Of a stretch of DNA of 64,000 nucleotides, positions 13,900 to 20,616 are shown in pieces. The notes under the pieces were generated by a model. It ran no database searches. It was not told the DNA's origin and saw only the letters and a list, made by a program, of their open reading frames with translations. The DNA lies in the sequence record NC_041975.1, one strand, 5' to 3'. Position numbers and translations under genes: made by a program. Numbering within the stretch: the stretch's first letter is position 1; each line of letters opens with the position of its first letter.

Positions 13900-14616
13900 A
13901 TGTATGGTTTATTAATCCTCGCCTTGCCTCAGTCACCGTACGTCCACATGAGTGCGATGACTGCGGACAGGTTTACTGAACTGCTCCCACAACTCCAGAA
14001 AGAGCTCGATGCAGATATCTTTCCTAATGTGTGTTTCCAGGGTGCATTCAATGTCAGTAATACCCGTACGGTCACTCAGCTGTTTATTCCGTGTAGCGGA
14101 TTGGTGGCGGCACGGGAGTTGGGGTATGAACAGATCCGCAATATTCTCGCCAACCCAGAGAAGGAAGTCCAGCATGTCACCAACATCGGTGATTGGCTGG
14201 GTATTCCTGGTAAGGTGATGTTTGATAATGCGGATGGATCTGTGGATGAGGTCGTTGTGACTGACATGTACAAATATCTGGTACATGAAAGAAGAGAGCG
14301 CTCTGTCTTTCGGTTCAGTCCTATTGATCTTAGTATAACCGATACCGAACCATTACCAACTCACCTCTACCCACGTGATCATTTCTACGACCAGGTCTAC
14401 CTCGATAAAGACGGTGAGCGTGCTTTCCTGTCTTACGGGTCGTGCGGTGAGGAAGGTTGTGTCATAGAACCCAGAGAAGAGAAACCCGTGCAAGTGTACG
14501 GCGTTACCTACTCGTCACTGGATGAAGTGGCCCGATGCTATAACCTGCCTGAGCAGTACGTGAAAGAACGCGTTGAGTCTGACAGCCTTGAATGGCTGGA
14601 GTGGTCATACTTGTAA
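13900..14616 (+). CDS. hypothetical protein with C-terminal HTH-like domain; paralog of 18165..18947
   Basis: Shares TNIGDWL and VTD-x-x-KYL with the paralog. C-terminus is VQVYGVTYSSLDEVARCYNLPEQYVKERVES...W. Confidence 0.75.
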   Translation: MYGLLILALPQSPYVHMSAMTADRFTELLPQLQKELDADIFPNVCFQGAFNVSNTRTVTQLFIPCSGLVAARELGYEQIRNILANPEKEVQHVTNIGDWLGIPGKVMFDNADGSVDEVVVTDMYKYLVHERRERSVFRFSPIDLSITDTEPLPTHLYPRDHFYDQVYLDKDGERAFLSYGSCGEEGCVIEPREEKPVQVYGVTYSSLDEVARCYNLPEQYVKERVESDSLEWLEWSYL

Positions 14617-14744: not shown

Positions 14745-14942
14745 ATGACCACAAACCCGCAGTTTATTTTCGTGGCTCAGAATTCTGATGCTACACACAG
14801 CGTAGAGAAACTGGAAGTAGGACGCGATACCGATACCCAGAAGAACCTCACGGAACTTCGTAAAGGTTTGCCGTTCGACTTCTCGTTTATCATGTCTGAA
14901 GAGGCGATCTATCAACTTCGACAGGCAGGGCACATCAACTAA
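14745..14942 (+). CDS. small hypothetical protein
   Basis: 65-aa ORF directly upstream of the Tad2-like gene. Confidence 0.55.
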   Translation: MTTNPQFIFVAQNSDATHSVEKLEVGRDTDTQKNLTELRKGLPFDFSFIMSEEAIYQLRQAGHIN

Positions 14943-14957
14943 ACTGCTGAGGTAGTC

Positions 14958-15410
14958 ATGACGAACAAATCGGAGATCTCACACGGTGGTGGTGATCAGC
15001 CTATGGAAAAAGAGCAAAGCAACTTATCCGTACTGGTGAACTACTCCACAGGTGTGATGGAAGGTGACCGTTTTAATTACTCGGTTGCATTGGCGCTGTT
15101 GAAAGACGGCATCAAAGTGAAACGCGAAGACTGGAAGAACGCTTTCCTGGTGTTCGTCCCGGGTAGTCAGAATGTTGAACTGCCAAAAGGGTCGCCGTAT
15201 GAAGTCGCACTCCACGGTAAGAAGTCCGTTGCCAATATTCGTCCGCACATCGATCTGTACACGGAGTACGGTGAATTCGAAGTCGGTTGGACAGCCAACC
15301 AGGAAGACACCAACGCCGATGACTGGATGATTGTCTTAGACAAGAACACCAATCAAGACGACAGTGCCGACGAAGAGAAAGAGTCCTCAAACGACGACTC
15401 GAAGTCATAA
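14958..15410 (+). CDS. tad2: DUF2829 / Tad2-like anti-defence nucleotide sponge
   Basis: YSVALALLKDGIKVKREDW...FLVFVPG...RPHIDLYT...WTANQEDTNADDW matches the DUF2829 pattern (F..AL..LK.G.KV.R.GW ... W.ASQ.D.LA.DW). Confidence 0.8.
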   Translation: MTNKSEISHGGGDQPMEKEQSNLSVLVNYSTGVMEGDRFNYSVALALLKDGIKVKREDWKNAFLVFVPGSQNVELPKGSPYEVALHGKKSVANIRPHIDLYTEYGEFEVGWTANQEDTNADDWMIVLDKNTNQDDSADEEKESSNDDSKS

Positions 15411-15415
15411 ACTCC

Positions 15416-15443
15416 AGGAGAGCTTCGGCTCTCCTTTTATGCC
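15416..15443 (+). terminator. hairpin-TTTATGCC element
   Basis: AGGAGAGC-TTCG-GCTCTCCT followed by TTTATGCC. Confidence 0.8.
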
Positions 15444-15459
15444 CATTAAGGAACATGTC

Positions 15460-15819
15460 ATGAGTGAAAAGAAAGCGTTCGAAGTGGTATTAGACAGTCG
15501 TCATGAACCGTACGAGGCTTACCAGTTATTAGTGGCGCGTATCAATACGTTATTACGCACCGGTCAAAGCTACCATGAAGTGAAACTCACGAAATGGCAG
15601 CTTTACGATAACGGTCTTCTTATCAAAGGAGATGATGATGTGCATATCTCCTTGTTGCGTCATTTCTATTACGATAAGCAACGCAATACGTTTGGTGGTG
15701 GCTTCATGGCCTTTGAAATCCTGGAAGATCTGGGCCGGTATTACAAAGTGTCCGATATCACAGAAGGGATGAGCGAGAACGTTGGCCTCGTCTTCACGGT
15801 CACGGTAACCACACCATAA
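15460..15819 (+). CDS. TAW-family paralog 1
   Basis: ATG 15460 follows AAGGA. Motif VKLTKWQLYDNGLLIKGDD. Confidence 0.75.
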   Translation: MSEKKAFEVVLDSRHEPYEAYQLLVARINTLLRTGQSYHEVKLTKWQLYDNGLLIKGDDDVHISLLRHFYYDKQRNTFGGGFMAFEILEDLGRYYKVSDITEGMSENVGLVFTVTVTTP

Positions 15820-15825
15820 GAGGTT

Positions 15826-16194
15826 GTGATGAAACCACTCTTCGCCATGAAGTTTGATACCCGGGATGCGGGATTAGGGGATCAGCTCGATCTCTTGCAA
15901 TCACGGGTTAAGGCTTACTCTAAACACGGCACCATGATCAAGGATGTGGCGGTGACGGCCTGGGTGGTCTGTTCGGATAACATGCCGGTTGCCGGTGATG
16001 ACCCTGCTCATGTCAGCATTATTCACCGTTACCGTTACGACATCGAACAGCAATGTGTGGTCGGTGGGGTCAGTGCCATGGATGCTCTGCGTGAGATCTG
16101 GTCGGCGTATGGTCCTGACTCTACCCTCCCGCCGTTCAGCCGGATACCCGGTGCTGTCGATATGCAATTTACCTTAACTGTATTCACTATTTAA
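15826..16194 (+). CDS. TAW-family paralog 2
   Basis: Motif VAVTAWVVCSDNMPVAGDD; GAGG RBS. Confidence 0.75.
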   Translation: MMKPLFAMKFDTRDAGLGDQLDLLQSRVKAYSKHGTMIKDVAVTAWVVCSDNMPVAGDDPAHVSIIHRYRYDIEQQCVVGGVSAMDALREIWSAYGPDSTLPPFSRIPGAVDMQFTLTVFTI

Positions 16195-16207
16195 AGGAGA
16201 TACCCGT

Positions 16208-16600
16208 ATGGGAGTTTCTACTGCTGCTGCTCGTCGTTCTAAAGAAGGGGTGTTTACCCGGAGTATTGAAGTGCGTCATGATCACTGGAAACGCGATATC
16301 ACTGATCTAGGATTGGATGTCCATAACCTGGTGTTGTGCAAGCAGGAGATCGTGTCAGTGACCATCACCGCCTGGCGGGCGTATGATGAGTGCGGTGTAC
16401 TGCGCGGCAGTGCCAAAGAGTTGAAGTTAGACATTACGGAATGGTTCCTCGGTGACAAAGGCCCGGTCATTAATGATGCGATCAAACCCCTCACGCTTGC
16501 CTTCATCATTAATCAACAACGCAGCCAACGCACGCCCTGGGTAAAAGATGTCCGCTTAGGGCTTAACCTGTCCATTGTCTACAAGAGGATTCAGCAATAA
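16208..16600 (+). CDS. TAW-family paralog 3
   Basis: Motif VTITAWRAYDECGVLRGSA; AAGGAG RBS. Confidence 0.75.
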   Translation: MGVSTAAARRSKEGVFTRSIEVRHDHWKRDITDLGLDVHNLVLCKQEIVSVTITAWRAYDECGVLRGSAKELKLDITEWFLGDKGPVINDAIKPLTLAFIINQQRSQRTPWVKDVRLGLNLSIVYKRIQQ

Positions 16601-16944
16601 TGGAAATTGTCCACCAACTCGATCTTAGCCACGGCTGGGAACCCTTCAACCGCCTGAAAGCCGCCTTTGCCAAGAAACCCCCGGAGGCGATCTACATCAC
16701 TGCCTGGGTCGCTCATGGCTATAAAGGAAACCTCATCGGTGATGAGCAAGTGGTGAAAGGGTCGTGTCAGGAGTGCCGGATTGATGTGACCCACATCTTC
16801 TTTCCCAGTCGGCCTGAGATCTTGATTGGTTTGTCGAGCTTCATTAACACCATTAATCGTGACGGGTCGGTGAAGATCCCGGCCTGGACCGGATCGATTA
16901 CTCTTTGTCTTGAATTAGCAATAAGTTATACGGATAGAATTTAA
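16600..16944 (+). CDS. TAW-family paralog 4
   Basis: Motif IYITAWVAHGYKGNLIGDE; TAATG overlap. Confidence 0.75.
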   Translation: MEIVHQLDLSHGWEPFNRLKAAFAKKPPEAIYITAWVAHGYKGNLIGDEQVVKGSCQECRIDVTHIFFPSRPEILIGLSSFINTINRDGSVKIPAWTGSITLCLELAISYTDRI

Positions 16945-17051
16945 TCGGCATATATTCTGTCTCGTTAGCGTAAGCTCGCTAAAAACCCTTTTAAAGTTTT
17001 GTATAACAAACTATCAACTTTGTAGAAAGAAACAAATAGGAAATTAATCTC

Positions 17052-17762
17052 ATGTTGCATGAAAACTTTGAAGCCTTAGTGGCGAACATCGCCAACCAAA
17101 TCAATCAGCTGGAACCAGAGGATCTACCGTCACTGATCCTGACCAAGAGCGGGGTCTACATCAACGACAAGCGACACGATCGCACTCGTCTACTGCTGAA
17201 CCTGTTTACCCCACAGCCCGGGCACACGCATGACGTGACCTTCGATCAAGAGCTGCAGGATGCTTTCGCTCACAACAACCTGGAGTTTATCAAAGTCGGT
17301 GAGGGGATCGCCTACGGACTACTGCGTACCAGTATCGTTAACAACGAACCCGCGGTGTTCTGGATTCACGCTGATGTCTCCGATGATGCATCGTTACTGA
17401 AGCAGGCCTGGGATATCATCACCGACCTGAAGAAGAATGCGGGCTACCCTCTGGCGTTCAATATCGATGTGCTTGACGTAAGCTGGGATGCGTTGAGCTG
17501 GGTACAACTGCTGGGGACTTTGCTTGATCGCACTGACCCGACACGCCGGTTTCGTTTGGCAACTAACACCGACTACGATTTTGTGTTATCCCAGAAAGCC
17601 ATCACGTACTATCAGGAGACGTTGAGTAAACGTCCGATGGCACCGGTTGCTTACCTCGATGACACTAACTTGTTTAACGGTGGCGACTTTAACGACAGTG
17701 ATCGCAACTGGGCAATCGCCCCGAACGACAGCACCCGCCCTATCGTGAAGGTGTATGTTTAA
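17052..17762 (+). CDS. hypothetical protein
   Basis: 236 aa with an AGGA RBS. Confidence 0.75.
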   Translation: MLHENFEALVANIANQINQLEPEDLPSLILTKSGVYINDKRHDRTRLLLNLFTPQPGHTHDVTFDQELQDAFAHNNLEFIKVGEGIAYGLLRTSIVNNEPAVFWIHADVSDDASLLKQAWDIITDLKKNAGYPLAFNIDVLDVSWDALSWVQLLGTLLDRTDPTRRFRLATNTDYDFVLSQKAITYYQETLSKRPMAPVAYLDDTNLFNGGDFNDSDRNWAIAPNDSTRPIVKVYV

Positions 17763-18164: not shown

Positions 18165-18947
18165 ATGGCTATGACGTTCGAAAAAGAAGGGGACACGTTG
18201 CACATTGTGCGACTGAGAACCAAAGGCTGGTACCACATGACGGTAACCAGCGATCCTGATGCGAGTATGGATATCGTTAACACGAACTTACGTCAGGGCA
18301 CTTTTACTGATCCACTTTTACAACACCAGTACGACATCTGTAAAAAAGAGATGGGGCAAGACCCCAATCCAAATGACATCGTTTTCCACCAGTTCGTGAC
18401 CACACCAGACCAGACCGGGTATCAGTCTGGCCACTGGATGATTCGTGATCACATTCGCCACGGCTATTCACTGAAGTGTTTGACTAACATCGGTGACTGG
18501 CTTTCGACCGCAGCCTATCTTTATATCCCAGACCCTGATGATAAAGAGGGTGGTGAGAGAAAATACAAAGTAACTGACTTAGGTAAGTATCTCGACAAGG
18601 AAGAGTTGTTGGGTCACTCCGACCACCTGCCGATGTATTTCTTGCCTGATGAGGAACCGGGTGACAGCTATGATGAGTTGATTGAAACCCATCGTCTTCC
18701 GCAACCTGACAAAGGTTACTCTTGTGTGGCCATCAAGAACGGTATGTCGTTTAGTTTGCTGACGTACAACAACTCCAAGCGGGTGCTTTCAGAAGAGGAA
18801 GAACTGCAAACCACAACCGTCCCAGTCAGGGCAGATGGTTTGCTGTACAGCTCCGTCTTAGAGTTGGCTATGGCTAAGAACGCCCCAGTCTGGTTTGTCT
18901 TGGAGATGCTAACCTCCGAAACCGACCCAAACTGGCATTTCGTCTAA
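18165..18947 (+). CDS. paralog of 13900..14616 with C-terminal HTH-like domain
   Basis: TNIGDWL and VTDLGKYL; C-terminus VRADGLLYSSVLELAMAKN...W. Confidence 0.75.
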   Translation: MAMTFEKEGDTLHIVRLRTKGWYHMTVTSDPDASMDIVNTNLRQGTFTDPLLQHQYDICKKEMGQDPNPNDIVFHQFVTTPDQTGYQSGHWMIRDHIRHGYSLKCLTNIGDWLSTAAYLYIPDPDDKEGGERKYKVTDLGKYLDKEELLGHSDHLPMYFLPDEEPGDSYDELIETHRLPQPDKGYSCVAIKNGMSFSLLTYNNSKRVLSEEEELQTTTVPVRADGLLYSSVLELAMAKNAPVWFVLEMLTSETDPNWHFV

Positions 18948-19035
18948 CCGAGATTGGCTGTGGGGAATCCTATGCAATTGCAAAGTGTAGAGAGAACCAC
19001 GGCCAATCGTAAGCTGTATCATAAGGAGAGAGATT

Positions 19036-20616
19036 GTGAGTGAAGCTAACCAGAACATCGTAGAAAGCTACGACGACCTGCCGAAGAACGCGCAGAAAGG
19101 TGATCGCTATACCGTGCGTGAAGACGCGATCGTTTATGAACTCCAGGAAGATGGTTCTTGGAAAGACGTAGACATCAACGAACAGGTTGATCAGGAAAAC
19201 GAAGAGCAGGCGCAGACCGAAGATGGTCAGCAGTCTGACACCGGCGCAACTGACCAGCCAGCCTCTGATGAAGAGAGCGATGCTGATTCGTCTGAAACGA
19301 CAGCTACCGATGAAGAAGACCAGGTAGATGACAACGGCGATGACAAGCAGACTCCGGCTGAAGAGAAGCAGGAAGAAGCAGCGCAGGCGGTTGATGAAAC
19401 CCAGCCACGTGATGACCCTTACGTACGAGGAGCGAACAGCGATGCCAATCCGGCACAACCTGAAGATGCGAATCAAACGCAAGATCAGACTGACGAAGCA
19501 GGACAAACTCCTGATTCTTCTGACGATACCAACGCGCAGCAGGAAAGCACTGATGGCGTTGCGACGCAGGATGCGAAAGAGCAGGCTAACATCCCGGAAG
19601 GGGTAGATCCTGAAGAAGCGCAACCTGACAACCAGCCACTGGCAGTAGCACCGGTTGAGCAACCCCCTGTTCAGCACGAAGCGGTCGCAGTTGATCCTAA
19701 CGCTGACCAGCCATCACCTGAAGCGCGTCCAGACAGCAAGATCGAAGAAGCGGCTGAACTGAACGCACAGAAAGAAGATGCGGCTCGTGATGAGATCGCT
19801 GAAGCCGGTGCTGATGCACAAGCTGCGACCTCTGCTGAACAGACTGACGCAGGCAAAGCCAAAGAAGACGCACAGGCTGAAGGCCAGTTGCCGAACGATG
19901 GTGCCGCTGATGATGTCGCCGCCGGTAAACCACGTAATGACCAGACCTACACCGAAGATCAGAAAGCGGCGAACACGCCAGCGCCTGAAATCGTGCAGGC
20001 TCAGGAAAACCATACGTCCGAGCCCGACCCGGTAGTCAGCCAGGAAGAGACCCATGTGCAGAACGCCACGGACCCTGACCAGCCGACTATTATCCCGCAG
20101 GAAGCGAAGTCTGAATCACTGGCGCATCAAGCTGCTGATCCAACGCAGGAAACTGTGTTTGTTAAGCAGGATGAAAACCTGGACCCGGAAGTGCGCGTGC
20201 TGCAACAGCGCATTGAAGAGTACATCGGCAACATGGGTGTGAACGGCAAGCACGATCGCCGTGACGGTCCGAAGTATCAGGCTCGCCTGTACAAAGACCT
20301 GCACTCCATCATGGCGCTGGAGCCAGTGAAGTTCAAGCAAGTGATGGACTACCTGCTGAACCGTGTGTATGAAGAACGTGCCGGTGCTTTCTCCGACACC
20401 TATACACGCCGTTACTTCGACCAGCTGTCACCGATGCACATGCAGACCGATCGCGTGCGTGAGTTTGACAACATCCTGTCGCTGGTAACCACTGTGGGTC
20501 ATTCCAAAAACCGCAGTCGTGCCCTGCAGCAGGTTGATCTGCAACGCGCCCTGAAGAACATTCAGGATGCCGGTAAGCAGCAGCGTATGGCAGCGTACTT
20601 TGATGCTCTGCGTTAA
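19036..20616 (+). CDS. acidic, largely disordered protein with folded C-terminal domain
   Basis: GGAGAG RBS and GTG start. About 330 aa rich in D/E/Q/A/P, followed by a helical C-terminal domain. Confidence 0.85.
   Translation: MSEANQNIVESYDDLPKNAQKGDRYTVREDAIVYELQEDGSWKDVDINEQVDQENEEQAQTEDGQQSDTGATDQPASDEESDADSSETTATDEEDQVDDNGDDKQTPAEEKQEEAAQAVDETQPRDDPYVRGANSDANPAQPEDANQTQDQTDEAGQTPDSSDDTNAQQESTDGVATQDAKEQANIPEGVDPEEAQPDNQPLAVAPVEQPPVQHEAVAVDPNADQPSPEARPDSKIEEAAELNAQKEDAARDEIAEAGADAQAATSAEQTDAGKAKEDAQAEGQLPNDGAADDVAAGKPRNDQTYTEDQKAANTPAPEIVQAQENHTSEPDPVVSQEETHVQNATDPDQPTIIPQEAKSESLAHQAADPTQETVFVKQDENLDPEVRVLQQRIEEYIGNMGVNGKHDRRDGPKYQARLYKDLHSIMALEPVKFKQVMDYLLNRVYEERAGAFSDTYTRRYFDQLSPMHMQTDRVREFDNILSLVTTVGHSKNRSRALQQVDLQRALKNIQDAGKQQRMAAYFDALR

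Follow-up and report, generated by a model that had tools for sequence, protein, structure and literature searches.

Four tandem paralogs of a small protein family in a variable slot beside a Tad2-like gene of Erwinia phage vB_EamM_Special G

Introduction

In nucleus-forming phages the DNA is protected from nucleases, yet the phages remain within reach of immunity that acts through signalling or targets RNA. To our knowledge, little is known about the accessory genes of these phages that act against such immunity. A locus of this kind may lie in a 64,000-nucleotide stretch of sequence record NC_041975.1 (hereafter the window, numbered from its first letter), in which a Tad2-like gene, gp277, is followed by four small open reading frames (ORFs), gp278–gp281, annotated as hypothetical proteins. 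Are the four ORFs related to each other, and do they work with their neighbour against host defence? An earlier note, made from the letters alone, regarded them as cryptic tandem paralogs sharing a spaced motif and a terminal alternating β-strand, recognised no known family in them, and proposed an expanded counter-defence family. The ORF coordinates, lengths, motif strings, and C-terminal strings that it quoted match the window exactly.

The window is the final 64 kb of the 273,224-bp genome of Erwinia phage vB_EamM_Special G, a nucleus-forming jumbo phage of the genus Agricanvirus. Its positions 14900–17100 are 100% identical to positions 224124–226324 of the Special G record KU886222, and ten other Agricanvirus phages, represented by 14 further database records, match them at 93.7–98% identity. 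RAY, a close relative of Special G, is a member of the Chimalliviridae whose nucleus formation was shown experimentally, and accessory genes account for 56% of its total (PMC10299810). Here we report that gp278–gp281 are four ancient tandem duplicates of one protein family and thus real paralogs, and we weigh what they may do.

Results

Sequence kinship of gp278–gp281

Pairwise BLASTP matched gp278 with gp279 (E 1.6e-13), gp280 with gp281 (E 2.6e-7), and gp278 with gp280 (E 1e-3), and gave no significant match for the remaining cross-pairs. In PHROGs, gp278 and gp279 were assigned to phrog_6658 (E 5e-60 and 5.5e-66), gp280 to phrog_11644 (E 1.5e-90), and gp281 to phrog_11536 (E 6.4e-80), with weak cross-hits among these three families. 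To connect the two pairs, one profile was built for each (278/279 and 280/281) with orthologues from AH06, pEa_SNUABM_37, and L004–L006, the last being contigs assembled from public sequencing runs. When the profiles were run against 500 six-frame segments of the window, the best non-self match of the 278/279 profile was gp280 (E 0.014), and those of the 280/281 profile were gp278 (E 2.6e-4) and gp279 (E 0.22); neither profile found a fifth paralog among these segments. Alignment of the two profiles by hhalign gave a probability of 68.8% (E 4.5e-5) over 35 columns around the strand that carries a T-x-W motif, whereas three neighbouring gene families used as controls (phrog_6749, gp282, and gp283) reached 0.5% at most. 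The same control values rule out an origin of the array from these larger neighbour families.

The motif hydrophobic-x-hydrophobic-T-x-W occurs five times in the 55,092 six-frame residues of the window, and four of the five copies lie inside the four ORFs, where 0.016 would be expected. It occupies the same position and the same strand in both pairs. The spaced motif described in the earlier note is therefore present in all four ORFs beyond chance. Only T and W of the β2 strand were robustly invariant, and the invariance of an Asp varied with the alignment used.

Scans of gp278–gp281 detected no Pfam family at E <= 1, no named family in PHROGs or NCBIfam, and no catalytic or other family signature in these three collections. 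Profile searches of PDB sequences with the family gave no match at E < 0.4. The failure of the earlier note to name a family is thus borne out by these searches. The four genes matched no Rfam family and share no repeat at the nucleotide level.

Predicted fold

The structure of gp278 was modelled with AlphaFold2 (AF2) from a ten-sequence alignment in five models, the best of which had a predicted local distance difference test score (pLDDT) of 88.6 and a predicted template modelling score of 0.79; the other four had pLDDT of 60–70. The predicted order of elements is a strand, a helix, two long strands, a short hairpin, a helix, and a C-terminal strand. This last strand corresponds to the terminal alternating β-strand of the earlier note, whose strings are present in the ORFs. 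A model of gp281, made from 280/281 sequences only (five sequences), was of low confidence (pLDDT 54) and had the same element order as gp278.

Foldseek searches of BFVD with the gp278 model recovered an independently predicted model of gp278 itself (template modelling (TM) score 0.99), the RAY orthologue of gp279 (E 1.1e-9, TM 0.85), an orthologue of gp280 (E 2.3e-4, TM 0.68), and an orthologue of gp281 (probability 0.99, TM 0.57). Four proteins with A0A7D3U* accessions were interspersed among these top matches, and unrelated proteins followed below with probability <0.4. The reciprocal search with the gp281 model recovered the same set (TM 0.58–0.64). All four orthologue groups are thus top-ranked from either model, indicating that gp278–gp281 are predicted to share one fold. 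In PDB, Foldseek found nothing significant, the best match being DNA polymerase eta (E 0.11, TM 0.40), and neither Foldseek against PDB nor the PDB-sequence profiles revealed a likeness of the four proteins to any solved anti-defence protein. The predicted isoelectric points (pI) of gp278–gp281 are 5.5, 5.4, 9.5, and 6.4; since the four proteins are not strongly acidic, a DNA-mimic mechanism is not suggested.

It may be asked whether 278/279 and 280/281 are two unrelated two-member families that look alike by chance or convergence. The weak cross-pair BLASTP matches (1e-3 at best), the modest hhalign probability over a short alignment, and the low confidence of the gp281 model would fit such an origin. 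However, the profile matches between the pairs are reciprocal best among the 500 segments, the control families show no comparable signal, and the same motif stands at the same place of the same strand in both pairs. Furthermore, Foldseek finds all four orthologue groups from either query model with probabilities of 0.96–1.00, while the next unrelated matches reach 0.44 at most, except for one weak Klebsiella phage protein (probability 1.00, TM 0.44). We therefore regard chance or convergence as very improbable. BLASTP, hhalign, profile matches, and Foldseek agree with the proposal of the earlier note: the four ORFs belong to one family and are tandem paralogs that have diverged but kept a common fold. 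The profiles and the fold together join three PHROG families of unknown function into one previously unlinked superfamily.

Reach of the family

When 1.84 billion representatives were searched exhaustively by profile, only six true clusters emerged, all from this phage clade. Word-indexed protein searches agreed in returning the close clade only, and a locus scan of IMG/VR found only a RAY-like contig. The family appears to be confined to a single clade of nucleus-forming jumbo phages, which comprises Agricanvirus, Salmonella phage SA002, and Erwinia phage pEa_SNUABM_37. The profile search also returned three long proteins with ankyrin or β-propeller repeats, which were rejected as spurious.

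SA002 carries three tandem ORFs, 2860, 2870, and 2880, whose lengths of 103, 115, and 108 aa recur in three of the A0A7D3U* proteins. The pEa_SNUABM_37 orthologues of these ORFs are 00315, 00316, and 00318. The SA002_2870 group matched the 280/281 profile in hhalign (probability 75%, E 2.5e-5, 71 columns) and in hmmsearch (E 2.8e-6). From the lengths and this hhalign link we infer that the A0A7D3U* entries of BFVD belong to SA002. The other two SA002 groups are tied to the family by predicted structure only. A further entry, A0A7D3UGG0 (156 aa), matched the gp278 model with a TM of 0.76; it was not located in SA002 185–288 kb. Searching the phage collection by tblastn with the gp278-like protein of pEa_SNUABM_37 gave no SA002 match. 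Weaker matches to the family fold (TM 0.44) were A0A173GDU1 of Simmy50 (181 aa) and A0A7R8MJQ2 of Klebsiella phage Eowyn (119 aa). As judged from these models, further members of the family may lie scattered or be more distantly related. A 143-aa ORF of L004 and the pEa_SNUABM_37 ORFs 00314 and 00317 were examined as candidates and showed no detectable relation to the family.

The variable slot between gp275 and gp282

The array lies in a slot within a conserved order of genes: gp273, gp274 (the β′ subunit of the virion RNA polymerase (vRNAP)), gp275, the slot, gp282, gp283, gp284, and gp285. This order is common to Agricanvirus, SA002, pEa_SNUABM_37, and Proteus phage 10, and homologues of gp275 adjoin the slot in the latter three as well. 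The slot itself varies. In Agricanvirus it holds gp276, the Tad2-like gp277, and the four family members. The L006 slot is of this type without gp278, and that of L004 has gp281 replaced by an unrelated 143-aa CxxC ORF. In SA002 the slot holds an extra phrog_6749-like paralog and three small, distant members, and in pEa_SNUABM_37 it holds a gp278-like gene, two other ORFs, and four small ORFs, of which one is linked to the family by sequence, two are orthologous to SA002 members, and one is unlinked. In Proteus phage 10 the slot is empty. The slot thus appears to have gained and lost members, exchanged alleles of them and, in one case, received an unrelated gene in place of a member, and the array falls within the variable accessory-gene arrays of jumbo phages. 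The replacing ORF of L004 (L004:7319-7750, on a 283-kb contig) has a weak match to the CxxC zinc-binding family NF047912 (E 0.009).

No Tad2-like gene was detected at E <= 1e-5 in SA002, pEa_SNUABM_37, or Proteus phage 10. Because members fill the same slot without a Tad2-like gene in SA002 and pEa_SNUABM_37, the array is apparently older than its adjacency to Tad2. A 65-aa gene at the place of gp276 is also present in AH06, L004, and L006, and none is annotated at that place in SA002, pEa_SNUABM_37, or Proteus phage 10.

Selection, divergence, and allele exchange

The ratio of nonsynonymous to synonymous substitution rates (dN/dS), estimated against Ea35-70, MadMel, and RAY, was 0.03–0.13 for all four genes, which indicates that gp278–gp281 are functional genes under purifying selection. 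Divergence among relatives is uneven, both among members and among lineages. Compared with AH06, the identities of gp278–gp281 are 58, 68, 40, and 73%, while that of the Tad2-like gene is 87%; compared with L004, those of gp278–gp280 are 86, 40, and 48%, and gp281 is absent. The Tad2-like gene keeps 83–87% identity to AH06 and L004. There was no compositional anomaly in GC content or in GC content at third codon positions (GC3), and the duplications appear to be old.

The gp279 gene occurs in two types. The Special G/RAY type and the Ea35-70/MadMel type share 73% nucleotide identity (synonymous divergence, dS, 1.37), whereas the flanking genes are 96–99.8% identical between these phages. The divergent segment is sharply bounded (~15870–16195), and the Ea35-70/MadMel allele is nearer to that of AH06 (88% aa identity) than to that of Special G (74%). 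These data show allele replacement through recombination. MadMel and Special G are classified in the same species. The array is thus diversified as described in the earlier note; its copy number and alleles differ among related phages, as expected of host-interaction genes.

The Tad2-like neighbour gp277

The gene upstream of the array is Tad2-like, in agreement with the earlier note. gp277 matched Pfam PF11195 with E 4.6e-14 and 53.2 bits against a cut-off of 25, and it matched the solved Tad2 chains of SptTad2 (8wjd, E 1.1e-5), ModTad2 (9eib, 3e-5), and Tad2 (8v3e, 3.4e-5). Homology to Tad2 is therefore, on sequence grounds, a solid assignment at the domain level. Two parts of gp277 have no counterpart in the alignments to the solved Tad2 chains (88–101 aa), an N-terminal extension of ~37 aa and an acidic tail at the C-terminus. 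Tad2 proteins sequester glycocyclic ADP-ribose (gcADPR) as tetramers (bioRxiv 10.1101/2023.05.01.538930). Residues 1–133 of gp277 are identical in the other ten Agricanvirus phages; the database records, that of Special G included, number 16. Since its nearest relatives beyond Agricanvirus are only ~42% identical and are found in small unrelated Vibrio and Pectobacterium phages, gp277 looks horizontally acquired. The Tad2 link thus appears to be specific to one lineage and no property of the family.

A hairpin lies between gp277 and gp278. Its 8-bp GC-rich stem is capped by a TTCG loop, a T-run and a TTATGCC tail come after the stem, and the RNA fold has −16.9 kcal/mol (z −3.27), with none of 200 shuffles as stable. 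It is conserved in AH06, L006, and RAY, and is kept in L004 through compensatory changes. A terminator scanner did not pick it up. TTATGCC occurs 18 times in the window against 6.7 expected, a count that none of 100 shuffles reached, and a strong hairpin stands directly 5′ of 11 of the 18 copies. These hairpin elements follow genes in tandem and in convergent arrangements. Because so many copies stand behind hairpins, including sites between convergent genes, the GC hairpin with TTATGCC looks like a phage-specific terminator-type element. Within the tail there is also a TATG, which in phiKZ forms the core of late promoters, with transcription starting at its G (PMC4666361). On either the terminator or the promoter reading, a transcript boundary is likely between gp277 and the array. 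No such element was found after gp281, and the next on the + strand lies past gp285.

These observations bear on the proposal that gp277 and the array form one island, in which the four proteins would work with Tad2 against defence, as sponges for different immune signals or as a hetero-oligomer. gp277 and the array are adjacent on the same strand with short gaps, the Tad2-like assignment is firm for the domain, the sizes of the four proteins are typical of sponge proteins, and the copies and alleles are variable. The hairpin may also leak and allow co-transcription, as its tail ends only ~17 nt before the gp278 start. However, members occupy the same slot without a Tad2-like gene in SA002 and pEa_SNUABM_37, a conserved terminator-like element parts gp277 from gp278, and the four proteins show no likeness in sequence or structure to solved Tad1, Tad2, Acb-type, or other PDB entries. 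In addition, the RAY orthologue of gp277 (RAY gp273) was detected by mass spectrometry (MS) of lysates, while the four proteins were not (PMC6690015). A joint action with Tad2 thus seems unlikely.

The virion-gene setting

Paralog arrays of particle proteins occur in phiKZ-like phages. It is conceivable that gp278–gp281 are minor virion-associated, injected, or assembly-accessory proteins of the surrounding block of middle and late virion genes, which is the main rival to a role on the host side. The neighbouring gp274 corresponds to RAY_270, annotated as vRNAP β′ subunit, in SA002 the gp275 homologue carries the annotation virion structural protein, and a baseplate protein is encoded upstream in AH06. 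The RAY orthologue of gp285 (RAY gp281) was abundant in lysate MS, where it ranked 6th by retrieval number (PMC6690015), and the TATG in the tail of the hairpin is that of phiKZ late promoters (PMC4666361). On the other hand, RAY gp274–277 and their Deimos-Minion orthologues were not among the proteins detected by liquid chromatography–tandem MS of lysates, a weak negative since only ~45 proteins from unpurified particles were listed (PMC6690015, Table 3). The slot is dispensable, being empty in Proteus phage 10, and structural parts seldom undergo the loss and replacement of members seen in L004 and L006. A virion role is thus rather unlikely.

The position of the array downstream of a vRNAP subunit gene in a nucleus-forming phage would also suit phage-internal accessory factors, possibly a hetero-oligomer, that modulate the phage RNA polymerases or the phage-nucleus life cycle. 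The tight packing of the four genes, with a 1-nt overlap of gp280 and gp281, would favour stoichiometric co-production. However, the variation in copy number and the allele replacement fit poorly to an obligate complex on conserved phage machinery, and in the exhaustive profile search the family was absent from all other chimalliviruses. We consider such a function improbable.

Gene layout and neighbouring features

The features of the locus are given in Table 1. The gaps between gp278 and gp281 are 9, 13, and −1 nt, the start of gp281 sharing 1 nt with the stop of gp280, and a Shine-Dalgarno-like site precedes each of the four starts. For gp279, an alternative GTG start at 15826 would yield 122 aa. 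A scan of the window for sigma-70 promoters gave matches at or under the chance level.

Table 1. Features in and around the slot (window positions)
Feature	Position	Strand	Description
gp275	13900..14616	+	phrog_6749 (PHROG match E 8.7e-137); conserved left border of slot
gp276	14745..14942	+	65-aa ORF, phrog_11788; accompanies the Tad2-like gene in Agricanvirus-type loci
gp277	14958..15410	+	Tad2-like (DUF2829), Pfam PF11195
Terminator-like hairpin	15416..15443	+	between gp277 and gp278
gp278	15460..15819	+	119 aa, family member 1, phrog_6658
gp279	15829..16194	+	121 aa, family member 2, phrog_6658
Divergent allele segment	15870..16195	.	within gp279; Special G/RAY type vs Ea35-70/MadMel type
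gp280	16208..16600	+	130 aa, family member 3, phrog_11644; basic, pI 9.5
gp281	16600..16944	+	114 aa, family member 4, phrog_11536
gp282	17052..17762	+	phrog_11471; conserved right border of slot
gp284	18171..18947		phrog_6749
Antisense ORF	18970..19677		long ORF antisense to gp285
gp285	19036..20616		526 aa
GC hairpin + TTATGCC elements	5699, 15437, 20662, 21777(-), 22882(-), 29276(-), 29319, 57237, 58185(-), 63111, 63899		terminator-type candidates; minus-strand sites marked (-)

gp275 and gp284 are paralogs that bracket the region, and a third phrog_6749 copy lies inside the slot in SA002 and pEa_SNUABM_37. The first two thirds of gp285 are acidic and of low complexity, rich in D, E, Q, A, and P, and the AT skew reaches 0.22 across 18–20 kb, at this gene. 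Because of this composition, the long antisense ORF is probably a by-product. gp273 is part of the conserved backbone; its homologue in Proteus phage 10 (L012:2741-3574, 41% identity) is annotated as 'putative anti-crispr protein'.

Discussion

The present analysis suggests that an ancient tandem duplication of one small soluble α+β protein of ~115–130 aa, with the predicted element order β-α-β-β-(β hairpin)-α-β, gave rise to gp278–gp281, which would be expressed and selectively maintained. The four proteins may act as non-enzymatic binding modules, in which the kept scaffold would consist of the T-x-W strand, the second helix, and the C-terminal amphipathic strand, and the surfaces have diverged to 12–26% identity. 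Each copy would then bind a different host-side partner, in defence or in host takeover. Such action would be independent of the Tad2-like protein, which probably joined the slot later by horizontal transfer. Dedicated variable loci are a known arrangement of anti-defence genes (bioRxiv 10.1101/2023.05.01.538930), and a conserved scaffold, diverged surfaces, and turnover in a variable locus together follow the pattern that anti-defence and host-takeover genes are known to show. As a whole, an ancient duplicate family that serves as an array of host-side binders in a variable slot is the best explanation, to which we assign a probability of about 0.45. Its evolutionary and structural part is highly probable, while the binder function is tentative and falls somewhat short of an even chance.

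Several points weigh against this explanation. Only one of the five AF2 models of gp278 is confident and the gp281 model is poor, and the sequence link between the two pairs is weak, as the hhalign probability of 69% indicates. Since only T and W are robustly invariant and the Asp depends on the alignment, the conserved residues may be purely structural. The slot lies inside a block that also holds a vRNAP subunit gene and genes whose annotations are virion or baseplate protein. Moreover, early action is not indicated because the vRNAP genes of phiKZ are middle genes (PMC4666361).

A counter-defence role of the array, the central proposal of the earlier note, remains plausible, and the interpretation given in the note stands in part. 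The family is real and varies in copies and alleles. Its proposed tie to Tad2 is weakened by the slot members without Tad2 in SA002 and pEa_SNUABM_37, the intervening hairpin, and the apparent horizontal acquisition of gp277, and the virion/vRNAP setting and the lack of likeness to solved anti-defence proteins in the searches above weaken the case for the role itself. In a more specific form, the four proteins would be defence inhibitors of a new fold, i.e. signal sponges or direct blockers, diversified by duplication and cassette-like allele exchange. We regard this as doubtful; if it is true, the slot is a true anti-defence locus of a chimallivirus. In any case, the locus offers a compact and well-delimited set of candidates that have no PDB match, are under clear purifying selection, show turnover of copies and alleles, and have a recruited Tad2-like neighbour. 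Should the four proteins prove to be no more than minor proteins of the particle or its assembly, the locus would be of interest chiefly for taxonomy.

The locus can be compared with several known systems. Anti-CRISPR loci and the anti-Gabija gad1/gad2 locus of SPbeta-like phages likewise occupy a fixed site between conserved genes and hold varying sets of small genes. Unlike those loci, the slot lies in a virion/vRNAP block, and the tie to anti-defence consists here of the Tad2-like domain assignment only. The phiKZ-like paralogous particle proteins likewise are tandem, highly diverged, and near virion genes in chimalliviruses. Those proteins are larger and occur in particles, whereas gp278–gp281 have 114–130 aa and none appeared in the protein lists for the RAY and Deimos-Minion lysates (PMC6690015). 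The Tad2, Tad1, and Acb2 sponges likewise are small, soluble phage accessory proteins, and a true Tad2-like gene lies directly upstream of the array; the four proteins themselves have no Pfam, PDB-sequence, or Foldseek likeness to Tad2 or to any solved structure. The Tad2 fold consists of a helix plus five strands (bioRxiv 10.1101/2023.05.01.538930), and the predicted element order of the gp278 family differs from it. It agrees with the ferredoxin-like β-α-β-β-α-β order, with an inserted hairpin, although the predicted model has no significant PDB match. Finally, the four proteins are full-length members of phrog_6658, phrog_11644, and phrog_11536, which PHROGs holds as three separate families. 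Structure comparison unites these 'unknown' families and further ORFans into one superfamily, to which three or four small ORFs of SA002 and pEa_SNUABM_37 are added.

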